A DNA stretch of 64,000 bases, from positions 806,001 through 870,000 of the forward strand of contig JBLWGC010000104.1 in the NCBI GenBank assembly GCA_048772705.1, given 5' to 3'. Positions 2,525 through 37,847 of this stretch are shown one piece after another (the stretch's first letter is position 1; every line of letters begins with the position of its first letter). Source of the DNA: Leidyana gryllorum EB-2025a (lineage: Eukaryota; Protista; Apicomplexa). Both the position numbers and the translations under genes were made by a program. The notes under the pieces were generated by a model. The model made no database searches. It was not told where the DNA came from and was given only the letters and a program-made list of their open reading frames with translations.

Positions 2525-3415
2525 ATGCGTCTCTCCTCCTTATTTGTTGCCGCTCTTGTCCTCAACGTCGGTTACGGATCAGAGTCTTCGCTTCGCTCTG
2601 CGAACTTGAGGCAGCTCGAGGATGAGGAGGAACAACGACTGTGTTTCTGGCCTTGGTGCGTGGCAAGCACCACCACGACCACAACAACGACAACAACAAC
2701 CACAACAACACAGGTCGACTTGACATCGGAGGGGCCGACGACAACGGAGACAACAACTACGACAACGACTACGACTCCGGCACCTACCACGACTCCCCCG
2801 CCAACAACTCCGGCGTCGACTACGACGGTGCCGATTGTCCACTCCACTCTGACCACAACCGGCACCCCACAAGTGGTACTGACGACGGGTCCGGCATCGA
2901 CTACGACGGTGCCGATTGTCCACTCCACTCTGACCACAACCGGCACCCCACAAGTGGTACTGACGACGGGTCCGGCAGCGACTACGACGGTGCCGATTGT
3001 CCACTCCACTCTGACCACAACCGGCACCCCACAAGTGGTACTGACGACGGGTCCGGCATCGACTACGACGGTGCCGATTGTCCACTCCACTCTGACCACA
3101 ACCGGCACAGCCCAAGCCACACTTACCACGGGTCCCGTCGTGCTGCCAACGACCGCTACAGCACAGCCAGTTCAGTCCACTGCTGCTACTGTTTGCCGGA
3201 AAGGAGGCCCAATTGTAGGCGACCTGGCCGCTTGTAAAGCAGCAGTGACCTCCATCTTACCGGTGGCTGATCATGAAGTGTGGTGCAAAGAGCACTGCGA
3301 TGAGGTGATGAGTGACGCAGCAGGCACCCCGTACGTCTGGTGTCAAGCTGTGGGAGTTTGCGACCTGACTGAATGTGTGTTGACTTTCTGGAGTACAGCC
3401 TGCAAGGCGGTTTAG
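2525..3415 (+). CDS. Secreted Thr-rich mucin-like protein with 27-aa repeats and the same 8-Cys domain (paralog B)
   Basis: Signal peptide MRLSSLFVAALVLNVGYG from ATG 2525, poly-Thr tracts, C-terminal CRKGGPIVGD...CDLTECVLTFWSTACK closely matching paralog A. Confidence 0.88.
   Translation: MRLSSLFVAALVLNVGYGSESSLRSANLRQLEDEEEQRLCFWPWCVASTTTTTTTTTTTTTTQVDLTSEGPTTTETTTTTTTTTPAPTTTPPPTTPASTTTVPIVHSTLTTTGTPQVVLTTGPASTTTVPIVHSTLTTTGTPQVVLTTGPAATTTVPIVHSTLTTTGTPQVVLTTGPASTTTVPIVHSTLTTTGTAQATLTTGPVVLPTTATAQPVQSTAATVCRKGGPIVGDLAACKAAVTSILPVADHEVWCKEHCDEVMSDAAGTPYVWCQAVGVCDLTECVLTFWSTACKAV
2813..3136 (+). repeat. 81-bp coding tandem repeat, 3 near-identical copies plus 1 degenerate
   Basis: Each unit encodes ASTTTVPIVHSTLTTTGTPQVVLTTGP. 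Confidence 0.92.
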
Positions 3416-3744
3416 AGTTTAAAGATTTCTATAGTTTGAATGGATTGTCCCCACGCTTTGAAATTCATCCCCTAATATTGCTAATGAAACATGAGCACCA
3501 AGTGATGAGATAATGTAGCATTCAGGATGTATCCGAGCAGCCGCTGTTGTTGTGGTCTGGGCACTGTCCACACACTCTGCTGTTGTTTCATCGCCCTCCA
3601 GCATTCTGAGTTCGACACAATATATCTGTTCGCTCTTCCCGTTCTTGGTGGTTAAATCAGCTTCGTCAGTGAAAGTGGAGCTATTCTAATCTGGTTGGGG
3701 TGGCGGGTAGGTGTTCCGGACAGAAAAGTTGATATGGCCAGCAC

Positions 3745-4616
3745 TCAGCTCTTCACGTCGCTCTTCTGCGCCAGATAGATGTATATGTAAGGGTTGGCCG
3801 AGGCTGACTGAGGGCCCCAGATCTCAGGGGGGAGTTGTCGGGACAGTGTTCGTACAGAAACATCCCATTGCAGGGGTGCACGCTCGAACATTTGGAGCCG
3901 ACTGTTAGGAAACGCGTGAGACACACAAACGAAGGCACCTCCAGGCCTGCAGAGAGAAAGATTGAGACAGCCAACTTGATCATCATATAGCTGGGTAGGT
4001 CCACAATAGGCTTAGGACATCCGCTTACTTTAGGACCCGGTACACTTCTACGAGAACTTTGTGGACTTCTGGCGGTGCTACATCAGCACACTGAGCAGAG
4101 CATTCATGTGATGAATGTGTTTGGCGCACTCACCATGAGGCTATCGATGAGGCCTTTATCGATCACATGCGTGAAAGTGCCGCTTGCAAACTCGTTCATG
4201 TGCCGTGCATCCATAGTTTGATCTGGGTGGAGGGCATGATGAGGGAGGGCACTTTTGAATTATCAGCGACTCACAGACGAGCTTAGGTTTGGCTGCTTTG
4301 GTTTTGAGACTTATGGCAACCGAGGAGTAGTCGATACTGGTAATTTCCTTGAATCCGTCCTCCTCCATATCTTCCGCAAGGGCTGAAACAGAGGTCGTGG
4401 GCACTCCTGGGGTTCGCTCTTACTGGAGGTGCCACAGCCAATGTGCAGAATGTTGGCCTTCTTGGCATTAATTACTTCACGAAGGAATGGTTTTAGGTGA
4501 CCATAGTTGCAGTACCATTCAAAGACCTCAGGGTCTCTGTTACGGGTTGAATATAATGGGTCAGAGCCTCACCTGGTGTACTTGTCATCCCAATATTCTC
4601 GTTTGGAATACTGCAT
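3745..4616 (-). CDS. SAM-dependent methyltransferase, METTL13-N/EEF1AKMT4-like
   Basis: Spliced translation MQYSKREYWDDKYTR-DPEVFEWY...ILHIGCGTS..LAEDMEEDGFKEITSIDYS...VYRVLKPGGAFVCVS; several short introns. A further 3' exon toward 3419 is possible. Confidence 0.85.
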
Positions 4617-23908: not shown

Positions 23909-26900
23909 CTAATGACGGCTCCTTCGACTCATCTCGGTGGAGACTTGAGATCTTCTTGAGCCGCCAACGGATGAGGAAATCGATTTGGTGGCCACAGTGG
24001 CAAAGTCCATTCCCTGTAGACATGAATGGGGGAGTAGGAACAACAGTAGTTTCGGATAATTACCTTGGGAGGGATGATGGTAACCGACAGAATAGTCTTT
24101 CCACGACCTTTGACCTCCACTTGGTGCGAGACATGGCGAGCAACTTCTTCAGCTAGATGACGGGTCTCATGGTCTGAGCCCAAGAAATCGGACACCTGCT
24201 TCTGGACTTGATCCTTGCTCGCGATGGAGAAGTGCTTGTAACCCAGTTGCGTTTCGGCGGCAGGTACGAACAAAGTGACGACCGGAGGTACCAGATAACC
24301 ACTCTTGCACGCTCCCTTGAGTTCCGAACTGGAGAACTCCAATGTCGGTTCCTCGCCACTGGGGTATACGGTGACGTGGACACGCTTGGGACCAGTTTGG
24401 GTGCAGTGAGCCTTGAGGTCACGGACAGCAAACTTGCTGAAAGCGGGGACGTCGAAACTCCATCCGCCTTGCTCATCAGAGACAGTGACATTGCAGTTAG
24501 CCAACTTCTCCAGGAACCTAGGGACAATGAGATGAGAGACGTGTCATCCAATCAATGCCATCAATTTAGTTGTGTACGGAGGGGTTAGTGGAGTGCCGAG
24601 GGGGAGGATGAGACTCACCGAGATTCCTCGAGGGGCGGGCAGAACAATGCCGAGAAGACCGAGAAGGTGACAACGCAAGAGTATGCGGCAAGCAGAGAGC
24701 AGCATGCGGCAACGAGCCAGAGGAAGATATCAGCAATCCACGATGGGTCTTTCTTGTTGACGGCGTAGAACACGAAGGAGCTGGCGGAGAAGGCGATAGT
24801 CGCGAGCATTATGACGACAAGCCAGTTCTCGACGCCGCGCGAGTAGGGACGAGTAGCTATGGGACAAATGATGTCGGAGAAGTGGTCCTGTTCGCTTTAC
24901 TTACTGGCAACGTAGCTAAGGAAGGCGCCTGAGAGAAGGGCAATGAATGAGAACATGGCGGCGTCAACTTTATATCCTTCAGACGCGAGCGCCACTCCAA
25001 CGAAAATGCCAATGAGAATCCGGTAGAGGAAATCGCCGATGCGGATGAAGGGGATGCGAGCACCATCGTAGAAGAAGGCATTCTTTCCGGACGCGATGGG
25101 ACCGGACAATTGAGATGTTTTCACAATGAGAGGGATCGAGAAGCTGCCCGTGTCGTGGTTGACTTGGGCGTGGAAGCGGTTGAGACCCTGATACGTGAAG
25201 AGGATGTCGAGCCACTGTGTTCGCAGCAAACCAGCAACCAATCTCTGGCCCTTGCAGGGTCCGCCGGGGGCCCGTGTGCGAGTGACCTCTACGATCTGGG
25301 GGTTCTTAGCCAACGGATAAGCGGCTTCCTTGTGACCACGAGCCAACTTGGCGGGAGGGAAGATCTCGTCGGAGCCACCATTGTTGAACAGCGCTTGGCT
25401 AAGGCTGACCGGGATGATATCCGCAACAGTGCTGATCCATCTGTATGGGAAGAACCCTTTGCACAGACTGCGGTTGACTGGCTGAGTGAGAAGTTGATCG
25501 GCTTGAACATCCATCCAGTAGCCAGACTCATCCTCCAAAGAACCATCTTCACGGACTGAGCTGTTCCAGATCCAGCAGACTTTGCGGTCATTGACAGCTG
25601 ATTGCACCTCAAAGTAGGCCATCGCAATCCAGGCACAGTAAAAGGCTAAGACCACACCAGCAATAGCTTTCCAAGCTTGAGTGGTAATGTCGCTGGTCAG
25701 GATCATGGAGGCACCCGCGCATGTGGGGAAGGACAGCCAGTGAAGGACCCGACTTTCCCAGTTACCAAAGTTGATGCGGTGTGGCTTGGTGTACTCCGAC
25801 TCGAACATATGGAATTTCATATAGACAAAAGCATGAACTATGAGGAAAATGCCGATAGCCGTGGCGGACCAGAAGAGACAACCACAGGCGTTGCGGATAT
25901 CAGTCACGTCACCCAAACTGCTCTCGCCCCAGAGCTCAAGACCATAAGCAGAGGAGAACGAAGTGATTTCAAGAAGCTGTCGGCGCTTCAAGCTATCACC
26001 CACGGTCCAGGGCAGAGGCCAGAAGAGGGTGACCCACTTGAGAGGTGCAACCATCTCATTGAGTACAGTAGAGCCACGCATGAAGTTCGCGAAGCACAAG
26101 TACTGAATGATGAGAGTAAGAGTGGCGGCAATCTCAGTGGCACCAAGAGGCACACCCAGACCGAATACATTAGCCGCGCCAATAACTCCAACAAGAGCCA
26201 ACAAGAGAATTGCAAGCAACAGGGCGAGGATCCAACCGAAGACCGCCAATAAGGATGGGAGAGCAGTGCCACTGAAGTAGACGGGCCACGACTTCTGGTA
26301 TTGGCCAGCGTATGCTGTGAGGGTGAGAGCGTTGGAGTAGGTGAAGGGAATGGTGGGCTGACGGTCGAGGAGACGAACCTCAACACGACCATTCGCCGAA
26401 GTCAAAACGTATTTGATGCTCGGTTCGTTGTTGCTCACAAGGCGAGTTTTATGAGAGTCAGTTTTGGGGTCGGGACATTTATATGCTTCCTTCTCTTCAT
26501 CGAACAAACACTCATGTCCAACATCATCGACAACAAGACGTGGCGGCAGGATTTCTTCTTCTGGCCAATCAGAGTTGATCAAAAGAGCGTATTTCCGCTC
26601 AGCCGGAACATTGGGGTAGGAATGTGCTCGCGAACAGGTGACTTCAACTAACTGAGTATGTCGGTCTTTCTCACGCTTGACTGTGAGTTCTGCGCCATTC
26701 GTAGCCGAACGTCCATTCACCTTCAATGCTGACTTTGTATTGCAGCCAATCTTCAAGGTCACTTTGTTCGCAGCAGGAGCCGCATAGATGTGGTACACAG
26801 AGTCATCTTGATTAGCGACTGGCTGAACCAATACCGCATGACCAGTGTCGTCGTACCCCTCGACCACCTTAAGCATCGCAGGTGGTGGATACTTTTGCTT

Positions 26901-27479
26901 GAATTGAACACGGTACGAAGCCGTGGTCCCGTCCACAGGGCTGACAACTTTAATTGACACTGGCAGGTCACTTCCGTCATCCGGAAGATCAATTTGCTTC
27001 TTCAGGGCCAGTGCGCTAGCTTCAGGGTCGGATTCCTTGTTCCCTTTCCAATTGAGAGTCACCAATGGCATGCCATCCGATTGGTATTGCGGTAGAGAAC
27101 GATCTACTTCGGGCACCACGGCGACTTGGTCAACTGGTTGGTCAATATTCACGGTGTATTTGAACACGGTCGGGTCAAACGCTGGGTCGAGCGCACCATG
27201 AGAAAGTAGAATATTCCTCAGAAGTACTGAATAACTGTCGTCGTGGAGAGGCCCTGGAGGGGGAGGGGGTGGAGGAGGTGGACCGGGAGGTCCACGAACA
27301 GGTGTAGGCGCGTCGGACACTTGCTTAATGTCCTCATCCATCGCTCCGGCCGCGAAAAAGTCGCCGATGCCAGCCCCGACTTGTCGGGGAGGCACGACCG
27401 CGGCAAAGTCCACGCCAGCAGACACGCCTATCGCCGATAGTGCCCCAACCAGGAGACACCGAGTCATTGGAGCCTTCAT
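23909..27479 (-). CDS. Signal-peptide multi-pass membrane protein: poly-Pro, cadherin-like beta-sandwich ectodomain, TRP/FLC-like TM region, cytoplasmic tail
   Basis: Signal peptide MKAPMTRCLLVGALSAIGVSAG; LDPAFDPTVFKYTVNI; many TM helices; RPYSRGVENWL. Introns join the 863-aa, 64-aa and 191-aa ORFs (ESR|FLEKLANCNV) and a last exon ending at TAG 23909. Confidence 0.75.
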
Positions 27480-27776
27480 CAGGACCAAAATCTGCTACCA
27501 GATCGGTCGTCAGCCGCCGGGGGTGTTATGAATTGATACAGCAGGCCACGCAACGAGAAGCGGAAATTTCAAAAACCCCCTCGCTTTCAGATCCCAAGCC
27601 CCCTTTTTTTGCTCAAAATACGCTAATGCACAGGACTGGCCACACACAGACCACCGGAGTCTCTCTCAATCTTCCACCTTACACACACTTTTCCCCCACA
27701 GCTTCTCAATATTTCACACATTCTCATCATTGGGAACCCTTGCTTTCTAAAACTTCAAAATGTCGCACTTGTTCTA

Positions 27777-29030
27777 CTAATCCTGAGCATTGATAACCTC
27801 CAGATGCAACTCTTTGGGCTTGTGACGCAACTTGATCTCTACCTCATCGCAGCAGTCGCCGTCGCAGGGAGGACAGGGATCCACTTCACAGGGAGGACAC
27901 TCCGGTACAGTAGTGGGACGCAGGTTGGTCTTTGTGGTCGGCGGTTGGGTCGATCCGACAGGGGTCACCGTCGCTTCCGGGGTAGTGGTCTCGACCGTGG
28001 TGGTGGGTCTGTCCGTCACTGAGGTAGAGGCCTCTGCTGTCGTAGTGGGGGTTGTGGCCTCGGTAGTGGTTGTGGTAGTGGCCTCGGTAGTGGTGGTCGT
28101 CGTCGGAGCGGCGGTTGTTGCCGGCCCACATTCAATTTCCTCGATGTGAGTGATAGTTTCGCTGAGTACAGTCCAGAAATTGCTGGAGTCCTCAGCCAAA
28201 CCGTTCACGAAGGCACTGTCTTGGCCGATGAAGCTGTTGAACCAGGTCCAACTGTCAACTGGAAGCTCATTCCAGTAGTCGCCATCGTAGATCAAGAAGG
28301 CCGCGTATGCTTGACGGGCCACAATCGCTTGCTTGACTTGCTCAGGCGTGGGATAGTACTCAGCCAGACATTGATCGGCTGCATGGTCCTCATCGAATGT
28401 ACCCGAGAACTTCGTCATGCCATAGACGTTCAAATCATCTCCTTCAAAATGGGGAGGAGCATCCGTGGCAACAACGAGTAGTCGGGCGGCTTCGGGATTG
28501 GACCAACCCGGGGTCGCCGACTGAGAGGCGGCGACCAGGGTGCCGAATTGGTTCTCGCTGGGGTCTCCACCTCCAACCGAGAGCAGTTGGCCGTAAATTC
28601 CCTCTATCACAGAGGTGTCGGCCGTCAGAGGTGCTTCGAACTTGACACAGTAGTCAGTCTTGGGCTCTCCGAGTGACCAAATGGGTTTGTCGCGAAAGGA
28701 AACCACACTGAAGGTGGAACCTGGATGGGATGCGGTCAGTGTAGAAATCATCGTGGGCACCTGGGAATCCTTCATCATCGCAAAGTCATCTTGAAATGAG
28801 GCTGTCGCATCCTGGAGTATCACGACTTCGAGCGGGAAGTCACATTCTTCTGGAGAACGGCGTTTGAAATAGCTCTCTGGCAGAGCCGCTCTCCTCGAAG
28901 TCTCTCTCTCGTGCCAAGCTGGGGTCCGTTCGACTGGGCTGACAGCACCGTAGACCATCTCGAGGGTTTTGTTCTGGCCGGTTGCCGTCGCCAGAGCGAC
29001 TAACGACCCAACACTGATGAGAGAACGCAT
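27777..29030 (-). CDS. Secreted integrin-beta-like vWA protein with Thr-rich stalk, copy 1 (variant C-terminus EVINAQD)
   Basis: Signal peptide MRSLISVGSLVALATA; CDFPLEVVILQDATASFQDD, SFRDKP, GGGDPSEN, RLLVVATDAPPHFEGD, YPT, LAEDSSN; intronless CDS. Confidence 0.88.
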   Translation of the reverse strand: MRSLISVGSLVALATATGQNKTLEMVYGAVSPVERTPAWHERETSRRAALPESYFKRRSPEECDFPLEVVILQDATASFQDDFAMMKDSQVPTMISTLTASHPGSTFSVVSFRDKPIWSLGEPKTDYCVKFEAPLTADTSVIEGIYGQLLSVGGGDPSENQFGTLVAASQSATPGWSNPEAARLLVVATDAPPHFEGDDLNVYGMTKFSGTFDEDHAADQCLAEYYPTPEQVKQAIVARQAYAAFLIYDGDYWNELPVDSWTWFNSFIGQDSAFVNGLAEDSSNFWTVLSETITHIEEIECGPATTAAPTTTTTTEATTTTTTEATTPTTTAEASTSVTDRPTTTVETTTPEATVTPVGSTQPPTTKTNLRPTTVPECPPCEVDPCPPCDGDCCDEVEIKLRHKPKELHLEVINAQD

Positions 29031-29219
29031 CTTGATGGTGAATTGAAGCACTAAGTTCAATTATTTGAAACCTACGAGTCAGTCAAGGGTATGTCGCACA
29101 CAACGCAATCTCTCTATGGTGTCCGCACAGCATTCCTCGTTCAAGTGGGCTGTCTCATCAATCTCTTCGATCTATTTCTGATCTAAAAACTTCCTTTCAT
29201 TGCATTTCAATTCAAATGT

Positions 29220-30467
29220 TTAGGCATTCAGGATATCGAGATGGAGTTCCTTGGGCTTGTGACGCAACTTGATCTCTACCTCATCGCAGCAGTCGCCGTC
29301 GCAGGGAGGACAGGGATCCACTTCACAGGGAGGACACTCCGGTACAGTAGTGGGACGCAGATTGGTCTTTGTGGTCGGCGGTTGGGTCGATCCGACAGGG
29401 GTCACCGTCGCTTCCGGGGTAGTGGTCTCGACCGTGGTGGTCGGTCTGTCCGTCACTGAGGTAGAGGCCTCTGCTGTGGTAGTGGGGGTTGTGGCCTCGG
29501 TAGTGGTTGTGGTAGTGGCCTCGGTAGTGGTGGTCGTCGTCGGAGCGGCGGTTGTTGCCGGCCCACATTCAATTTCCTCGATGTGAGTGATAGTTTCGCT
29601 GAGTACAGTCCAGAAATTGCTGGAGTCCTCAGCCAAACCGTTCACGAAGGCACTGTCTTGGCCGATGAAGCTGTTGAACCAGGTCCAGCTGTCAACTGGA
29701 AGCTCATTCCAGTAGTCGCCATCGTAGATCAAGAAGGCCGCGTATGCTTGACGGGCCACAATCGCTTGCTTGACTTGCTCAGGCGTGGGATAGTACTCAG
29801 CCAGACATTGATCGGCTGCATGGGCCTCATCGAATGTACCCGAGAACTTCGTCATGCCATAGACGTTCAAATCATCTCCTTCAAAATGGGGAGGAGCATC
29901 CGTGGCAACAACGAGTAGTCGGGCGGCTTCGGGATTGGACCAACCCGGGGTCGCCGACTGAGAGGCGGCGACCAGGGTGCCGAATTGGTTCTCGCTGGGG
30001 TCTCCACCTCCAACCGAGAGCAGTTGGCCGTAAATTCCCTCTATCACAGAGGTGTCGGCCGTCAGAGGTGCTTCGAACTTGACACAGTAGTCAGTCTTGG
30101 GCTCTCCGAGTGACCAAATGGGTTTGTCGCGAAAGGAAACCACACTGAAGGTGGAACCTGGATGGGATGCGGTCAGTGTAGAAATCATCGTGGGCACCTG
30201 GGAATCCTTCATCATCGCAAAGTCATCTTGAAATGAGGCTGTCGCATCCTGGAGTATCACGACTTCGAGCGGGAAGTCACATTCTTCTGGAGAACGGCGT
30301 TTGAAATAGCTCTCTGGCAGAGCCGCTCTCCTCGAAGTCTCTCTCTCGTGCCAAGCTGGGGTCCGTTCGACTGGGCTGACAGCACCGTAGACCATCTCGA
30401 GGGTTTTGTTCTGGCCGGTTGCCGTCGCCAGAGCGACTAACGACCCAACACTGATGAGAGAACGCAT
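29220..30467 (-). CDS. Secreted integrin-beta-like vWA protein, copy 2
   Basis: Near-identical to copy 1; ends DILNA. Confidence 0.88.
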   Translation of the reverse strand: MRSLISVGSLVALATATGQNKTLEMVYGAVSPVERTPAWHERETSRRAALPESYFKRRSPEECDFPLEVVILQDATASFQDDFAMMKDSQVPTMISTLTASHPGSTFSVVSFRDKPIWSLGEPKTDYCVKFEAPLTADTSVIEGIYGQLLSVGGGDPSENQFGTLVAASQSATPGWSNPEAARLLVVATDAPPHFEGDDLNVYGMTKFSGTFDEAHAADQCLAEYYPTPEQVKQAIVARQAYAAFLIYDGDYWNELPVDSWTWFNSFIGQDSAFVNGLAEDSSNFWTVLSETITHIEEIECGPATTAAPTTTTTTEATTTTTTEATTPTTTAEASTSVTDRPTTTVETTTPEATVTPVGSTQPPTTKTNLRPTTVPECPPCEVDPCPPCDGDCCDEVEIKLRHKPKELHLDILNA

Positions 30468-30656
30468 CTTGATGGTGAATTGAAGCACTAAGTTCAATTA
30501 TTTGAAACCTACGAGTCAGTCAAGGGTATGTCGCACACAACGCAATCTCTCTATGGTGTCCGCACAGCATTCCTCGTTCAAGTGGGCTGTCTCATCAATC
30601 TCTTCGATCTATTTCTGATCTAAAAACTTCCTTTCATTGCATTTCAATTCAAATGT

Positions 30657-31904
30657 TTAGGCATTCAGGATATCGAGATGGAGTTCCTTGGGCTTGTGAC
30701 GCAACTTGATCTCTACCTCATCGCAGCAGTCGCCGTCGCAGGGAGGACAGGGATCCACTTCACAGGGAGGACACTCCGGTACAGTAGTGGGACGCAGATT
30801 GGTCTTTGTGGTCGGCGGTTGGGTCGATCCGACAGGGGTCACCGTCGCTCCCGGGGTAGTGGTCTCGACCGTGGTGGTCGGTCTGTCCGTCACTGAGGTA
30901 GAGGCCTCTGCTGTGGTAGTGGGGGTTGTGGCCTCGGTAGTGGTTGTGGTAGTGGCCTCGGTAGTGGTGGTCGTCGTCGGAGCGGCGGTTGTTGCCGGCC
31001 CACATTCAATTTCCTCGATGTGAGTGATAGTTTCGCTGAGTACAGTCCAGAAATTGCTGGAGTCCTCAGCCAAACCGTTCACGAAGGCACTGTCTTGGCC
31101 GATGAAGCTGTTGAACCAGGTCCAGCTGTCAACTGGAAGCTCATTCCAGTAGTCGCCATCGTAGATCAAGAAGGCCGCGTATGCTTGACGGGCCACAATC
31201 GCTTGCTTGACTTGCTCAGGCGTGGGATAGTACTCAGCCAGACATTGATCGGCTGCATGGGCCTCATCGAATGTACCCGAGAACTTCGTCATGCCATAGA
31301 CGTTCAAATCATCTCCTTCAAAATGGGGAGGAGCATCCGTGGCAACAACGAGTAGTCGGGCGGCTTCGGGATTGGACCAACCCGGGGTCGCCGACTGAGA
31401 GGCGGCGACCAGGGTGCCGAATTGGTTCTCGCTGGGGTCTCCACCTCCAACCGAGAGCAGTTGGCCGTAAATTCCCTCTATCACAGAGGTGTCGGCCGTC
31501 AGAGGTGCTTCGAACTTGACACAGTAGTCAGTTTTGGGCTCTCCGAGTGACCAAATGGGTTTGTCGCGAAAGGAAACCACACTGAAGGTGGAACCTGGAT
31601 GGGATGCGGTCAGTGTAGAAATCATCGTGGGCACCTGGGAATCCTTCATCATCGCAAAGTCATCTTGAAATGAGGCTGTCGCATCCTGGAGTATCACGAC
31701 TTCGAGCGGGAAGTCACATTCTTCTGGAGAACGGCGTTTGAAATAGCTCTCTGGCAGAGCCGCTCTCCTCGAAGTCTCTCTCTCGTGCCAAGCTGGGGTC
31801 CGTTCGACTGGGCTGACAGCACCGTAGACCATCTCGAGGGTTTTGTTCTGGCCGGTTGCCGTCGCCAGAGCGACTAACGACCCAACACTGATGAGAGAAC
31901 GCAT
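30657..31904 (-). CDS. Secreted integrin-beta-like vWA protein, copy 3
   Basis: Near-identical; E->G in TTPGAT. Confidence 0.88.
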   Translation of the reverse strand: MRSLISVGSLVALATATGQNKTLEMVYGAVSPVERTPAWHERETSRRAALPESYFKRRSPEECDFPLEVVILQDATASFQDDFAMMKDSQVPTMISTLTASHPGSTFSVVSFRDKPIWSLGEPKTDYCVKFEAPLTADTSVIEGIYGQLLSVGGGDPSENQFGTLVAASQSATPGWSNPEAARLLVVATDAPPHFEGDDLNVYGMTKFSGTFDEAHAADQCLAEYYPTPEQVKQAIVARQAYAAFLIYDGDYWNELPVDSWTWFNSFIGQDSAFVNGLAEDSSNFWTVLSETITHIEEIECGPATTAAPTTTTTTEATTTTTTEATTPTTTAEASTSVTDRPTTTVETTTPGATVTPVGSTQPPTTKTNLRPTTVPECPPCEVDPCPPCDGDCCDEVEIKLRHKPKELHLDILNA

Positions 31905-32093
31905 CTTGATGGTGAATTGAAGCACTAAGTTCAATTATTTGAAACCTACGAGTCAGTCAAGGGTATGTCGCACACAACGCAATCTCTCTATGGTGTCCGC
32001 ACAGCATTCCTCGTTCAAGTGGGCTGTCTCATCAATCTCTTCGATCTATTTCTGATCTAAAAACTTCCTTTCATTGCATTTCAATTCAAATGT

Positions 32094-33341
32094 TTAGGCA
32101 TTCAGGATATCGAGATGGAGTTCCTTGGGCTTGTGACGCAACTTGATCTCTACCTCATCGCAGCAGTCGCCGTCGCAGGGAGGACAGGGATCCACTTCAC
32201 AGGGAGGACACTCCGGTACAGTAGTGGGACGCAGATTGGTCTTTGTGGTCGGCGGTTGGGTCGATCCGACAGGGGTCACCGTCGCTTCCGGGGTAGTGGT
32301 CTCGACCGTGGTGGTCGGTCTGTCCGTCACTGAGGTAGAGGCCTCTGCTGTGGTAGTGGGGGTTGTGGCCTCGGTAGTGGTTGTGGTAGTGGCCTCGGTA
32401 GTGGTGGTCGTCGTCGGAGCGGCGGTTGTTGCCGGCCCACATTCAATTTCCTCGATGTGAGTGATAGTTTCGCTGAGTACAGTCCAGAAATTGCTGGAGT
32501 CCTCAGCCAAACCGTTCACGAAGGCACTGTCTTGGCCGATGAAGCTGTTGAACCAGGTCCAGCTGTCAACTGGAAGCTCATTCCAGTAGTCGCCATCGTA
32601 GATCAAGAAGGCCGCGTATGCTTGACGGGCCACAATCGCTTGCTTGACTTGCTCAGGCGTGGGATAGTACTCAGCCAGACATTGATCGGCTGCATGGGCC
32701 TCATCGAATGTACCCGAGAACTTCGTCATGCCATAGACGTTCAAATCATCTCCTTCAAAATGGGGAGGAGCATCCGTGGCAACAACGAGTAGTCGGGCGG
32801 CTTCGGGATTGGACCAACCCGGGGTCGCCGACTGAGAGGCGGCGACCAGGGTGCCGAATTGGTTCTCGCTGGGGTCTCCACCTCCAACCGAGAGCAGTTG
32901 GCCGTAAATTCCCTCTATCACAGAGGTGTCGGCCGTCAGAGGTGCTTCGAACTTGACACAGTAGTCAGTCTTGGGCTCTCCGAGTGACCAAATGGGTTTG
33001 TCGCGAAAGGAAACCACACTGAAGGTGGAACCTGGATGGGATGCGGTCAGTGTAGAAATCATCGTGGGCACCTGGGAATCCTTCATCATCGCAAAGTCAT
33101 CTTGAAATGAGGCTGTCGCATCCTGGAGTATCACGACTTCGAGCGGGAAGTCACATTCTTCTGGAGAACGGCGTTTGAAATAGCTCTCTGGCAGAGCCGC
33201 TCTCCTCGAAGTCTCTCTCTCGTGCCAAGCTGGGGTCCGTTCGACTGGGCTGACAGCACCGTAGACCATCTCGAGGGTTTTGTTCTGGCCGGTTGCCGTC
33301 GCCAGAGCGACTAACGACCCAACACTGATGAGAGAACGCAT
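32094..33341 (-). CDS. Secreted integrin-beta-like vWA protein, copy 4
   Basis: Same protein as copy 2. Confidence 0.88.
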   Translation of the reverse strand: MRSLISVGSLVALATATGQNKTLEMVYGAVSPVERTPAWHERETSRRAALPESYFKRRSPEECDFPLEVVILQDATASFQDDFAMMKDSQVPTMISTLTASHPGSTFSVVSFRDKPIWSLGEPKTDYCVKFEAPLTADTSVIEGIYGQLLSVGGGDPSENQFGTLVAASQSATPGWSNPEAARLLVVATDAPPHFEGDDLNVYGMTKFSGTFDEAHAADQCLAEYYPTPEQVKQAIVARQAYAAFLIYDGDYWNELPVDSWTWFNSFIGQDSAFVNGLAEDSSNFWTVLSETITHIEEIECGPATTAAPTTTTTTEATTTTTTEATTPTTTAEASTSVTDRPTTTVETTTPEATVTPVGSTQPPTTKTNLRPTTVPECPPCEVDPCPPCDGDCCDEVEIKLRHKPKELHLDILNA

Positions 33342-33620
33342 CTTGATGGTGAATTGAAGCACTAAGTTCAATTATTTGAAACCCTGAGACAGTGTATTCG
33401 AGGGTTTCACTTCGCTGTGTCACCTAGCTGGTCGAGTCTCTCTCAAGTTTTCTGTCCTGAACGAAGCTATGTCTCTCTCATTCCTGACAATTGGGTAGAT
33501 CGATGTCACACATTGAGAAATCGATGGTGAGGTCTAAGGTGAGCTGTCTCTACCTGATGCACTTAATGAATATACGGTGTTTGGGTGATTGGACTAATTA
33601 TCCACAAAATCTTGATCGCA

Positions 33621-35117
33621 TCATAGCTCGTCCCATGGTGGGCGATCGACATTGTGGACTGTGCGCATCAGCAGCATGGGTTTAGCCCAGTCAGTGAAAG
33701 GACATCGGGTGTCAAGCGCTGTAAATTTCCTTGGTGCATTTTGTTGCTCGGTGGAACACCTTCGGAGAGCATTAAGAAACAGATTGTCGACTATTCTAGA
33801 ATTTTGACCGAAGCCAGGTTTGAGGAGGAGGTCTGGTCGGTAGAACTGTTGTATGGCCAGGATCTTCGCAACCTGAGTCTCATTCAACCCATCAAAGATT
33901 TTCTGTAGCTCCCCAACAGGATCGGCTTCAAAAGCTTTCGTCGAGATTCTCAGCGTAAACTCCTCCCAAGGCACTTGACATTGGAAAGGCAAGGCATTGT
34001 CGAGATTCTTGTCGATCGTGTTGATGATGATAGCATCTTGCTGGAGTGCTTGATATATGTTGTCTTCGTGTGGGAATTCGCCCCGTGTGATGAGAGCAAA
34101 TTGAGTGCGACCAAAGACGTTGTCTCGGAGCTCCGCTGTGACGTTGCGATTTGTGGTGTCAATCCGGCAAGTTTCGAGGGGTCGGTCGCTCGGTTCACAC
34201 AAGGAATAACCTTCCAGTTCGGGCGCCGCCGGACCCCCAGTGACGACAAACTCCTTCTCACGGCGGAAAAAGCTCTTCAGTTCGTTGAAGGCCTTCCGAC
34301 GAGTGGTATACTTGGGATCAGCTTCGTTTGAGGTGAGGGGATCCACAATACTCAGCTTTGATGGGCGCGAGGCTTTCCATTTGGCCACATCTGGAGGACT
34401 CATCGATGACGACGGTTCATTCGCTGGCTGACGAGTGATCTCGTGTTGGAGTAATTGTGGGCGGAATAGTTGACAATACTGGAGAGTTGGTCGGTAGAAT
34501 CTTTCTATAGATATCATTTGACTCATCATGTAGTCAATCAAGACATCAGGGGGTGTAACACTCTTTCGTATGGGATGCTGATAGCGGTAGTTCTTTTTGA
34601 CGATCATCTCTGTACGATTGAGCAGCCTCTCGTGTACGGCTTCAGTCGAACTGAACATGACGAAGGCATGACCATGACTAGACATCCACAGGTTGTGGTC
34701 AAGTAAGTTTGCGAAAGCCCTGTCAAGGGACTCCCGAGCACCTTCTTGGCATTGTCCATCCAGGACCAAACCAGCAAAAGTAGGGACGAATATGAAGTCA
34801 GCCATATCCATCCGCTGTCGACGCCATGGGTGTGTGAGTAGAGCCTCATGAAATAGATAGTCAGACCGCTCGGTGGCATTACTGCATAGAGCCTCTACAT
34901 TTGCGAGATCCCCGTTCTCGAGAATATGGAATGTGACTTCCTTGCCGTTGTTCAACCAGCTCTTGGGATAGAAGTAGCGGCGTTCCTCATAGGACGAGAA
35001 GCTTGCATAATACTCTGGACTTTGAATCCATCTCTGACTCAAACTCAGCACACCAGGATACATCTCAGCGCCACATGGCCACGCCACTAACCCCCCCAAA
35101 ACGGTCCAACGCCACAT
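33621..35117 (-). CDS. Exostosin-family (GT47) glycosyltransferase-like protein
   Basis: Signal/anchor MWRWTVLGGLVAWPCGA; LLTHPWR..MADFIFVP; TQFALITRGE..IYQALQQDAI; LPFQCQVPWEEFTLRI. Confidence 0.8.
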   Translation of the reverse strand: MWRWTVLGGLVAWPCGAEMYPGVLSLSQRWIQSPEYYASFSSYEERRYFYPKSWLNNGKEVTFHILENGDLANVEALCSNATERSDYLFHEALLTHPWRRQRMDMADFIFVPTFAGLVLDGQCQEGARESLDRAFANLLDHNLWMSSHGHAFVMFSSTEAVHERLLNRTEMIVKKNYRYQHPIRKSVTPPDVLIDYMMSQMISIERFYRPTLQYCQLFRPQLLQHEITRQPANEPSSSMSPPDVAKWKASRPSKLSIVDPLTSNEADPKYTTRRKAFNELKSFFRREKEFVVTGGPAAPELEGYSLCEPSDRPLETCRIDTTNRNVTAELRDNVFGRTQFALITRGEFPHEDNIYQALQQDAIIINTIDKNLDNALPFQCQVPWEEFTLRISTKAFEADPVGELQKIFDGLNETQVAKILAIQQFYRPDLLLKPGFGQNSRIVDNLFLNALRRCSTEQQNAPRKFTALDTRCPFTDWAKPMLLMRTVHNVDRPPWDEL

Positions 35118-35135
35118 AGGTGCTGCCAAAAATAA
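35118..35135. promoter_or_regulatory. 18-bp head-to-head spacer (GT47 / CstF77-like)
   Basis: CAT-aggtgctgccaaaaataa-ATG. Confidence 0.55.
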
Positions 35136-37847
35136 ATGGGCCCACTTGACGTCTATGCCCACGATGTCTCCTCTCGAATTCTCGATCCTCAAAACGATGA
35201 GGCCAAATTCAAGGCCCTAATATGCGAGTTCCCTCATCACGTACGGTCACACCAAAAGATACACATATAAATAGCCCCTAGGCCACTGCATGGATTGCCT
35301 ATGCACGATATCTCCACCATGTCAAAGGCGACCACCAAGAAGCCCGTCGGATACTTGAAAAGAGTGCCACGGAACTCAGGTCTCTAGGTGTGTTCAGTAA
35401 AGTATATCGTCAAATCAATCACCTCTCACGTCAAAACAGACTTGTGGCTCGCTCTCGTAGAGCTCGAAGTTGAGATTGGAGACTCTCACGTATCGAAGTA
35501 TCGCACGCTCAAAGCAGCTGTCCAGGATGTAAGTCCATCTCTTCTTGTCAATATTCAATGGCAAAGTCACTTGTTGCAATGAGACTGCTTTGAGACGAGA
35601 CTCTTCTTATCAATCGCTACATACTCAGGTTGGATGGGATCCTCGATCACTCCCACTGTGGGACTCATTCTTCGCTCTTTTTGTGATGCTGCACAACTCG
35701 ACTGTCAAGTCTCTGGCCACCCAATCGGCTGAACCGGCAATCACAATGCCAACTTCGGCCACCGCGCCGCTGGGCCACTTGGAGGCTCCTTCGCAAGGCT
35801 CCTCATCAGGAGGGACGTCCGCTGCCAATAGCAACAACCTGGCACAGGACGAGGACCTGTCGCGATTCTTCACAACGGCGGACCAGCTAGACCTCACTAC
35901 TCGGGTTCCCGCGCGTACACTGACAGAAGCTCTGCTGAAACATCCTCTCCGAGACGAGCGAATTATGGACCTCCCCAACACGGAGGTCGAAGGAGATCAA
36001 TTGAAGACATTGAGTTCGAGTGGTGATCTGAACATGAGCGTTTTTTATGCTCACTTGTCTCGCCTTCTGCTCACCCCGTTGGTTGACTTGACATCCACAG
36101 CGGTGAAAAATGCTCTCGGCTCGCTGGAAGAGGGTCGCAGACAGGTGTACGAGCCAGTGGTGAACCATATCATGAAAATAAAGTCCTCTGTACTGGAGAA
36201 CATACCGTCGGAAGCTCTTATCAGTACTTCGAGTCCTTTGCATCCGGAGATGGACGAGCTGTATGCACCTTACTGGCTACAATTGGTGGAGTTTGAGCAA
36301 CAGGACGGGTGGCGGATTAGAGATGTCGACGCTTCTGTGTACGAGGCGCGTGTGGAGTTTATGTACAATTGGGCGTGCAACGTCTGCCATCATGTTCCAG
36401 ATGTGTGGTTCAGTCGCGTGCAATTCGCATTCCGAAGCGGCAACAATGATCGCGGTTTCCATATCCTATCTCACATCGTGGAGAAGGAGATTGTTCACGC
36501 AGGTAATGACTCGAGTTCGCGCTGCTCCTGCCGTCTTCCTCGGGGAGACATGGAGTTGGATCTTTACTTTGGCTTATTGCAATCTCACACTTTCTTGACA
36601 GATGAAATGGCCATCGTGCACGCTGACGCAGTTGCATTGCTGAAGAACAATGTTGGTCAAGCTGTCGACATATTGGCTTCGGCAGTGCGGTACTGTGTTG
36701 ACAAGGGACGGGTTATCGAACCTTCTCTCCTCTACCACTCATTGGTCAGCTGTCTGCGAGCCCACGGCCAAAGGGCTTGGGAGAAGGCCATTCGAGCTAT
36801 GCTGGCAGACCCGAAGGTCAAGGGAGCCGTGACAGATCATCTCTTACTCATGATCATCACGTTGCATCACACTTTGGAGCCGTCGGATGAATTACCGATA
36901 GCGTCCCTCATAGACCAGTCCGCGAAGCTCTTTCCCGACTCCTTGCCGCTCCAGATGTTGAGATCAATGAGGGTGGAGGAGATTCCTCGTTTTGTTGATT
37001 GCCGAAAGTGCTTATACGGAATGAGTGATATGGCCGGGAGAGTGTTGGTGACAGCCGGTGTCACTGAGCTGATAAAAAGGGCTGCGGAAGACAGTTATCA
37101 CTTCAGCTCCTCGACGTGGGTCAAGCGAAATTGTCTTTCCAGTCATCATTCATATGCAGGCGTGACGTCAGGAAATGGTTGTCGATCGCTTCCAGACTGA
37201 ACAGTTCCCTGACGGATGGCAGCAGTACTTCCGTCAATAACGCCAACTCTAACACAATATCGGGGGCGACGGGTGCCCATATCGATCTGGAAGACGAGCG
37301 CTATGTGCTGAAGTGTTTGTTGGTTCCGAATGGTGACAGTAAGTGCAGCATATTGTTGGTGCTTTCGGTGAACGTCTCGCAGAAACTTTTAGACGGTATA
37401 TGGCGATGGCTAAGGATTTGACAAGCCGAGGTTTGAACGCCGTTTTGACTCAGAATCGTTTGAATGAGGTGGCGATCGCTCAAGTTTCAACTAGCGGAGG
37501 CATCAATGATGAGAAGATCCAAGCTATCGCGCGCTCGGGACATCGTATCCAGCAGCTTGTTGAGATCCTGCAGAGCATCGTTCCTGCTAACGAGAGTAAG
37601 TCTGTGACAAAGGGTCGACGATGGGATATGTGGAACTCCAGGCTCGATGATGGATGAAGTAGACGCACCCAAAGAAAAAGCCTTGCTTCTTCGAGACATC
37701 TTGGAACGCACCGCTGACAAAGCTCGAAGTCGTCATCTGATCAGTCCAGTTCGTGTTGATCAGATGAAGACTATTTTGGCAGATCCCCAGACACTCAATG
37801 CTCTCGACAGATGGTTCAGATTCCAGCAAGCAACCAAGTCCTCATAA
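35136..37847 (+). CDS. HAT-repeat protein, CstF-77/Rna14-like
   Basis: Spliced N-terminus MGPLDVYAHD..EFPHH|ATAWIAYARYL; DLWLAL; VGWDPRSLPLWDSF; WLQLVEFE; RVEFMY..HHVPDVWF. Confidence 0.65.

Follow-up and report, generated by a model that had tools for sequence, protein, structure and literature searches.

What kind of protein is encoded by four almost identical genes that follow one another in a gregarine genome, and to what use might the parasite put it? The genes lie on the minus strand of a stretch of 64,000 nucleotides of Leidyana gryllorum EB-2025a (GenBank assembly GCA_048772705.1, contig JBLWGC010000104.1, positions 806,001 to 870,000), here called the window. Their 415-residue product comprises, in order, a hydrophobic N-terminus, an extension of ~45 residues, a domain of ~240 residues, a Thr/Pro stretch, a cluster of Cys residues and a hydrophilic end of 20 residues. 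The original prediction, made from the letters of this DNA, saw in these proteins secreted adhesins whose VWA domain resembles the beta I domain of animal integrins and not the alpha-I-type domain of the apicomplexan TRAP and MIC2 adhesins. Profile searches and model comparisons strongly support the assignment of the domain to the integrin beta I type, in fold as well as in homology.

The head domain and its metal sites

A profile built from the array protein and four gregarine homologues (A1) retrieved 41 distinct integrin beta chains from the PDB, with E-values of 3e-10 to 1e-7, ahead of any other VWA domain. A second profile (A2), built from 35 domains of the wider family described below, matched across the whole beta-2 I domain at an E-value of 2.5e-23, and its best 59 distinct PDB sequences were all integrin beta. 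Furthermore, all six members of the array's own subfamily match the Pfam family Integrin_beta (PF00362), the best of them with an E-value of 4.4e-10, and a match to this domain is already present in the precomputed Pfam annotation of public gregarine proteins. The top 50 Foldseek matches of a first AlphaFold model (predicted local distance difference test score, pLDDT, 61) were all integrin beta chains, so that integrin beta came out best in the very comparison with TRAP-type VWA domains that the original prediction had proposed. A domain-only model, built on the 35-sequence alignment, reached a pLDDT of 93.8 and a predicted template modelling score of 0.92, and was aligned, independently of Foldseek, to 48,161 PDB representatives. 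It shared the beta-I-specific fold elements of the alphaVbeta6 head (5ffg chain B; Z 28.6, root-mean-square deviation 2.2 Å over 228 of 248 residues) and gave Z scores of 23.3-28.3 with other beta I domains and 24.2 with the mouse beta-integrin-like protein Pactolus (2iue). Conversely, the next best VWA domain of any kind scored 16.0, integrin alpha-I domains 13-15.5, and the TRAP proteins of P. falciparum and P. vivax 14.5 and 13.4, respectively. This gap (23-29 as opposed to at most 16) rules out a generic or TRAP-type VWA domain, and the Foldseek matches, PDB profiles and model scores agree in bearing out the integrin beta I-like character originally proposed. A language-model Atlas search returned unspecific VWA clusters only.

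HMMER alignment to the beta-6 and beta-2 chains reproduces the series of motifs on which the original prediction had relied (DxTxS..DD, F.DKP, GD..E, TDA..HF, YP[ST] and EDSSN). The metal-ion-dependent adhesion site (MIDAS), the site adjacent to it (ADMIDAS), most residues of the synergistic metal-binding site (SyMBS) and the F.DKP, TDA..HF, DYPS and EDSSN motifs thereby stand in the same order and at the same spacing as in the integrin beta I domain. All MIDAS residues are present (D74, T76, S78, E159 and D190), with one Ser replaced by Thr, and the ADMIDAS Asp pair, D81 and D82, aligns with the DD of beta-2 and beta-6, in keeping with the equivalents that had been anticipated. Measured against the SyMBS ligands of beta-3, which we take to be D158, N215, D217, the P219 carbonyl and E220, three of the four side chains are present (D114, D156 and E159), and the P219 position holds a Ser that would give a backbone ligand. 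Across the family the MIDAS motif is conserved as QD.T.SF, and the 35 domains show little or no variation at D74, D114, K115, P116, D156, E159, T189, D190 and in the YP of the DYPS-like motif.

Sequence identity to integrin beta is ~20%, and the other parts of an integrin beta chain are missing from the array proteins. The Pfam search found no PSI, hybrid, I-EGF or beta-tail domain, with PF00362 as its only match, and the Thr-rich linker follows directly after the domain. No hydrophobic segment after the N-terminus was found that could be a transmembrane (TM) segment, and there is no cytoplasmic NPxY tail. A whole-genome search for an integrin alpha subunit gave no match to PF08441 (Integrin_A_Ig), which is weak evidence because control genomes were likewise negative, and a single match to the FG-GAP family PF01839, at 17.4 bits and below the cut-off; a very divergent alpha subunit may have been missed. 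We therefore rejected a true integrin beta subunit, given the missing domains and the lack of any alpha partner found; the array protein is a stand-alone, extracellular protein with a beta-I-type VWA domain and not an integrin.

The remainder of the protein agrees with the layout proposed at the outset, in which the VWA domain is followed by a Thr-rich stalk and a Cys-rich tail; the N-terminus is hydrophobic by eye, and a similar N-terminal hydrophobic segment opens every family member. The composition of the stalk, whose coding DNA contains a 12-bp microrepeat, would fit O-glycosylation and a mucin-like secreted glycoprotein. No window of 19 residues past the start of the array proteins exceeds a Kyte-Doolittle value of 1.0, so that there is no TM helix, and no hydrophobic tail of the glycosylphosphatidylinositol (GPI) type was found at their hydrophilic C-terminus. 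Full-length homologues from gregarine transcriptomes are colinear with the array genes and end at the same point, and old paralogues with saturated synonymous sites likewise have their stop at this position. Each open reading frame (ORF) is therefore the whole gene, without introns and without a hidden exon encoding an anchor, and the original claim that the proteins lack both a TM helix and a GPI signal holds. A further part of that description, a short propeptide ending in KRR, had to be dropped, since orthologues and paralogues keep a single Arg at this place (residues 56-58) and the dibasic site is not conserved among them. The positions of these features, together with those of the array and of the membrane-bound paralogues treated below, are collected in the table.

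Table. Positions of the array, its genes and their encoded features within the window (residue numbers refer to copy 4), and of membrane-bound paralogues elsewhere in the genome.
Feature	Coordinates	Strand	Basis or remark
Tandem array, 3.9 units of the 1437-bp repeat with four genes	27814..33384	-	position-by-position comparison
Gene copy 4, most upstream, 415 amino acids, reference copy	32094..33341	-	coding sequence identical to copy 2
Gene copy 3, 415 amino acids	30657..31904	-	2 base differences from copies 2 and 4
Gene copy 2, 415 amino acids	29220..30467	-	ORF from first ATG
Gene copy 1, most downstream, 417 amino acids, variant C-terminus (..LEVINAQD)	27777..29030	-	ORF from first ATG
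189-bp intergenic spacer	31905..32093; also 30468-30656, 29031-29219	-	ORF spacing
43-nt leader 5' of the ATG, sole 5' flank common to all four copies	33342..33384	-	copy comparison
Putative signal peptide, residues 1-18	33288..33341	-	hydrophobic N-terminus, by eye
VWA domain, integrin beta I type, residues ~60-300	32442..33164	-	PDB profile matches, Foldseek, model alignment
MIDAS D74-x-T76-x-S78 and ADMIDAS pair D81, D82 (residues 73-82)	33096..33125	-	HMMER alignment to D-x-S-x-S..DD of beta-6/beta-2
F-x-D-K-P (F-R-D-K-P), residues 112-116; D114 equivalent to the SyMBS Asp	32994..33008	-	D, K and P (nearly) invariant in 35 domains
GGGDPSEN, residues 153-160; D156 and E159 equivalent to D217 and E220 (MIDAS/SyMBS)	32862..32885	-	alignment and conservation
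TDAPPH, residues 189-194; D190 equivalent to MIDAS D251	32760..32777	-	T and D invariant
Thr/Pro-rich mucin-like stalk, residues 303-372; 33 Thr, 3 Ser and 9 Pro of 70	32226..32435	-	composition; pLDDT <50
Cys/Pro-rich segment, residues 378-394; six Cys in 17 residues, two CPPC	32160..32210	-	sequence
Conserved C-terminal motif V.IKL..[RK]P..L.L.I, protein end	32097..32156	-	at the C-terminus of 26 family genes in the genome
Type I membrane paralogues, same head	L038:2648-4387, L040:3093-4895	+	contigs C51, C230 (with the next row)
Type I membrane paralogue, same head	L039:1238-3190	-	contigs C51, C230 (with the previous row)
Type I membrane paralogues, same head	L042:1588-2754, 3240-4289	-	C104:438-445 kb
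Type I membrane paralogue, same head	L036:1759-2997	-	contig C133

The tandem array and the family around it

The four minus-strand genes, as assembled, are intact ORFs within a direct repeat with a period of exactly 1437 bp, which confirms the near-identical intronless genes that the original prediction had described. Identity between units begins at ~27814 on the 3' side and ends at ~33384 on the 5' side, and within these bounds units are either identical or separated by 2-18 differences. The most downstream copy carries ~16 base differences from the others, most of them close to the point on its 3' side where the repeat stops. With copies identical or only a few bases apart, the recent amplification, or homogenisation, suggested earlier stands.

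A dispersed paralogue on another contig (C2:79559-80782; L005:1501-2727:+) makes it possible to judge how these genes evolve. Its protein is 91% identical to that of the array, whereas third codon positions are 46% identical; dN between the two is 0.066, synonymous sites are saturated, and the head domain is nearly unchanged. Because the protein has been conserved although synonymous sites are saturated, the array protein is, as judged by this pattern of substitution, functional and under strong purifying selection. The same divergence means that the near-identity within the array reflects recent duplication or gene conversion and not slow evolution. No synteny with the array window was found in the 1.5-kb flanks of this paralogue, which rules it out as a second haplotype and makes it a dispersed paralogue. 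It also bears on whether the array could be a mis-assembled repeat or a set of recently dead genes, as the near-identity of the copies might suggest. We consider this very improbable: all four ORFs are intact, the copies are distinguished by single-base differences of their own, the 3' end of the terminal copy is unlike the others, the old paralogue is under very strong purifying selection, and the family forms tandem clusters on several other contigs.

The repeat boundary lies 43 nt before each ATG (window 33380-33390; equivalent positions in the spacers, e.g. 31945-31950), and an AG precedes it in both contexts (..CTCAG|GG.. and ..CGTAG|G..). This AG could be the splice acceptor of a 5' leader or a mere duplication breakpoint. 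In the internal copies, only 189 bp are available to hold both a 3' end and a promoter. The array is flanked by genes on the same strand: upstream, 33621-35192 (-) encodes an exostosin GT47-like glycosyltransferase (31.4 bits, slightly below the cut-off), and downstream, 24897-27488 (-) encodes a protein of 863 amino acids that combines a cadherin-like beta-sandwich with several hydrophobic segments. The neighbourhood may be a surface-coat locus.

The array is one part of a much larger family. In six-frame profile searches of the 15.5 Mb genome, the subfamily profile gave 58 matches and Pfam Integrin_beta 34; over 20 of these 34 exceed the cut-off, and the best (70.8 bits) lies on contig C204. 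At least 35 non-redundant family ORFs result, a count that is a lower bound since an ORF of 3563 amino acids on C180 and parts of the clusters on C33, C133 and C230 were not fully covered. Twenty-six of the genes share the Cys-rich tail motif of the array genes and have no TM helix, and there are giant multi-domain members, including a frame of 2233 amino acids with three domains and the 3563-residue frame just mentioned. A further ~9 members have a Gly/Ala-rich TM helix (..GVIAGAAGGA..) and, behind it, an acidic tail that ends in ..TMDMFQ or ..DYGG, and by analogy with known apicomplexan adhesins these membrane paralogues are candidates for glideosome-coupled adhesins.

The generic or alpha-I-type VWA family, PF00092, had no match in the whole genome at E ≤ 0.001, and TSP1 was found at just two loci (C121:110.7-113.1 kb and C160:92.9-93.2 kb). 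Since the membrane proteins share the beta I head and PF00092 was not found, the array represents the soluble branch of what is apparently the main family of adhesins in this parasite, and not an isolated mimic. It follows that the contrast drawn by the original prediction with "typical" TRAP adhesins fails in this genome, where the proteins with TRAP-like tails and TM helices carry the same beta-I-type head.

The family grows by local duplication. Other tandem clusters lie at C47:45.6-52.5 kb (five genes), C33:196-212 kb, C133:19-34 kb, C36:182-185 kb and C230:268-276 kb, and their members are more diverged from one another than the array copies are. A 2.7-kb repeat at C2:173410-198264 (at least 10 units; 182000-191999 inspected) was considered as a relative and set aside; it scored 22-24 bits to the tail motif, and its ORFs are acidic repeat proteins that look unrelated.

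Proposed function and its alternatives

On balance, we regard the array proteins as probably secreted, unanchored adhesive proteins of a coat or trail, which bind through cations and independently of an alpha subunit and are carried on a mucin-like stalk. This reading has indirect support from the conserved metal sites, from the TRAP-like membrane relatives, from the strength of selection and from the orthologous transcripts, which reach high assembler coverage (862-3193 for contigs from trophozoite-derived transcriptomes), a hint of high expression in trophozoites. In this model, the head would bind an acidic side chain of its ligand through Mg2+ at the MIDAS, with Ca2+ at the neighbouring sites modulating the interaction and no alpha subunit taking part. 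The O-glycosylated stalk would keep the head apart from the tail, and the Cys-rich tail would form covalent links, either between copies of the protein to give multimers or with the coat or membrane-bound relatives. With four near-identical copies, the parasite would make more of an adhesin that would be abundant in the trophozoite coat or gliding trail.

Several points weigh against this model. Taken singly, an array protein scores 22.3 bits against PF00362, under the cut-off of 24.8, and matches no other family, so that the assignment of its domain rests on the profile and structure evidence given above. The signal peptide was called by eye, and the roles of the stalk and the tail are ones that we infer. 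The complete ADMIDAS pair occurs only in the array subfamily, most other subfamilies keeping just the second Asp. Moreover, the position of N215 in the SyMBS is occupied by Gly, and the specificity-determining loop is ~16 residues shorter than its integrin counterpart, so that the protein may differ from integrins in how it binds ligands and in its allostery. A predicted complex between the C-terminal module and the VWA head scored 0.01, with the tail poorly modelled, and counts neither way.

The absence of an anchor, the six Cys residues within 17 positions with their CPPC motifs, and a four-copy dosage suited to bulk material would equally be expected of a structural matrix protein, in which VWA self-assembly and Cys cross-links would build a gametocyst or oocyst wall, glycocalyx or mucus rather than mediate adhesion to the host, much as in the extracellular-matrix VWA proteins collagen VI and mussel byssus PTMP1. 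These two proteins are indeed the first non-integrin matches in the PDB. However, the model aligns to matrix VWA domains with a Z of ~15, as opposed to 28 for beta I domains, the homologous transcripts come from trophozoite-derived transcriptomes, and adhesion is what the membrane-bound relatives, with their TRAP-like tails, suggest. We therefore judge a matrix function rather unlikely.

The adhesive coat or trail reading also has to be set against the suggestion, made in the original prediction, of a soluble integrin mimic directed at the host. Such a decoy would compete for RGD-type or other ligands of the extracellular matrix in the insect gut, and a secreted, unanchored, beta-I-type head with MIDAS and ADMIDAS residues is what it would require. 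Nevertheless, the ligand pocket of integrins is formed jointly with the alpha subunit, of which none was found, and the specificity loop is truncated, which together leave the proposal unsupported. The same domain recurs throughout the 35-gene family, membrane receptors included, and this speaks for the parasite's own adhesion. A decoy function appears improbable to us.

Comparison with other adhesion proteins places the array proteins, as probable secreted adhesive coat or trail components, among several partial parallels. TRAP and MIC2, from the same phylum, likewise present a MIDAS-containing VWA head on a stalk. Their VWA domain is of the alpha-I type (for TRAP, see PMC7351488), whereas the array protein has neither thrombospondin repeats, TM helix nor cytoplasmic tail, and a Pfam search of it gave no match to TSP_1 or PF00092. 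Its membrane-bound paralogues do resemble TRAP and MIC2, in that small residues abound in their TM helix and an aromatic residue stands close to the end of their acidic tail; PMC9250747 counts both among the features of TRAP-like proteins. Stand-alone heads of the beta I type, independent of an alpha subunit, also occur in secreted bacterial adhesins (Methylobacterium WP_269780293.1, with RTX repeats, and Okeania WP_324236081.1, cadherin-like), which differ from the array protein in their RTX, Calx-beta or cadherin-like partner domains and in their secretion route. Pactolus acts without an alpha subunit and has a soluble form as well, but its MIDAS residues are lost and an integrin stalk is kept; the array protein, by contrast, keeps the metal-site residues and has a mucin-like stalk instead. 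The Sib proteins are another case of non-animal adhesion proteins with an integrin-beta-like VWA domain outside the canonical integrin architecture, and they are membrane proteins with talin-binding tails. PF24909 did not match the array protein. It matched only bacterial relatives, two of them above the 27-bit cut-off and the rest below, and one Porospora protein, also below.

Relatives, origin and significance

An exhaustive search with the family profile returned 328 cluster representatives at E ≤ 1e-30 and 3126 at E ≤ 1e-10, and organisms were named for 30 of the 150 top matches. The named eukaryotic relatives belong to eugregarines (Blabericola, Porospora cf. gigantea B, where the protein is annotated as hypothetical, Polyplicarium and Lankesteria) and to a springtail. 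With Protomagalhaensia and Gregarina sp. Poly, recovered by a word-based search, six gregarine genera are matched, as the original prediction had surmised in expecting relatives there. The springtail, Orchesella dallaii, has three multi-domain proteins (CAL8127523.1, CAL8084034.1 and CAL8110882.1) with as many as 12 of these domains in tandem, encoded on contigs of 0.7-15.9 Mb, and in a quick tree its domains adjoin gregarine members of the membrane type. Gene transfer between parasite and host lineages, contamination, and an arthropod family that has escaped notice are possible explanations of these copies.

The nearest non-gregarine matches among those named are bacterial RTX, Calx-beta or cadherin-like adhesins from Methylobacterium, Okeania and metagenomes. 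They score ~150 bits per domain against the family profile, compared with 86 bits for human beta-2, and their clade, in a FastTree of 164 domains rooted at the midpoint, stands beside marine-gregarine sequences and the canonical gregarine subfamily. Both observations, together with the lack of any integrin machinery found in the genome, would be accounted for if the family had been acquired by horizontal transfer from bacteria whose RTX or cadherin-like adhesins contain VWA domains of the integrin beta type, and had then expanded. Horizontal acquisition, which the original prediction had also raised as a possibility, concerns origin only, is compatible with any of the functional readings, and strikes us as doubtful. 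The tree contains no metazoan or other eukaryotic integrin beta and is thus unrooted for this question, so that it cannot tell transfer from ancient shared origin. Moreover, the bacterial domains outscore those of gregarines on Pfam Integrin_beta (119-161 bits, compared with ~75 bits, at most 76, for the most canonical gregarine domains and 22 for the array protein), and their position may just mark a slow-evolving base of the family. By these scores, no gregarine copy comes as close to the animal Integrin_beta model as the bacterial ones do.

The integrin beta I domain is usually taken as a hallmark of adhesion in animals and in some amoebozoans and apusozoans, with isolated copies in bacteria. 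Here, it looks to be the dominant adhesive head of an apicomplexan lineage, is the sole VWA type detected in the genome, and occurs in soluble as well as TRAP-like membrane forms. Our literature searches for integrin beta, VWA or integrin-like proteins in gregarines found nothing relevant, and as far as searched the family is undescribed, the domain type itself being known. A cyanobacterial integrin-beta homologue is mentioned in a preprint (10.1101/2020.04.29.069435), and a survey of integrin evolution mentions just cyanobacterial and Sib-type outliers. A genome study of the marine gregarine Porospora sought adhesins through TSP1 only, and the word integrin is absent from it; its conclusion was that there are few canonical adhesins and that the machinery by which gregarines glide may in part be an alternative one (PMC9250747).

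Looking beyond the array, it is conceivable, though we hold it only tentatively, that eugregarines built their whole surface-adhesion system on alpha-independent integrin beta I domains, in which TRAP-tailed members would be coupled to the gliding motor, and those receptors or the host surface would engage a coat or trail made of the abundant soluble array proteins. If true, eugregarines would possess a second integrin-like adhesion system, outside animals, in which the regulatory metal sites ADMIDAS and SyMBS are retained, and it would supply the "missing" gregarine adhesins noted in PMC9250747. The family offers concrete candidates for the surface adhesins not yet identified in gregarines, as well as a natural experiment on the capabilities of a beta I domain, with its MIDAS, ADMIDAS and SyMBS residues, by itself.

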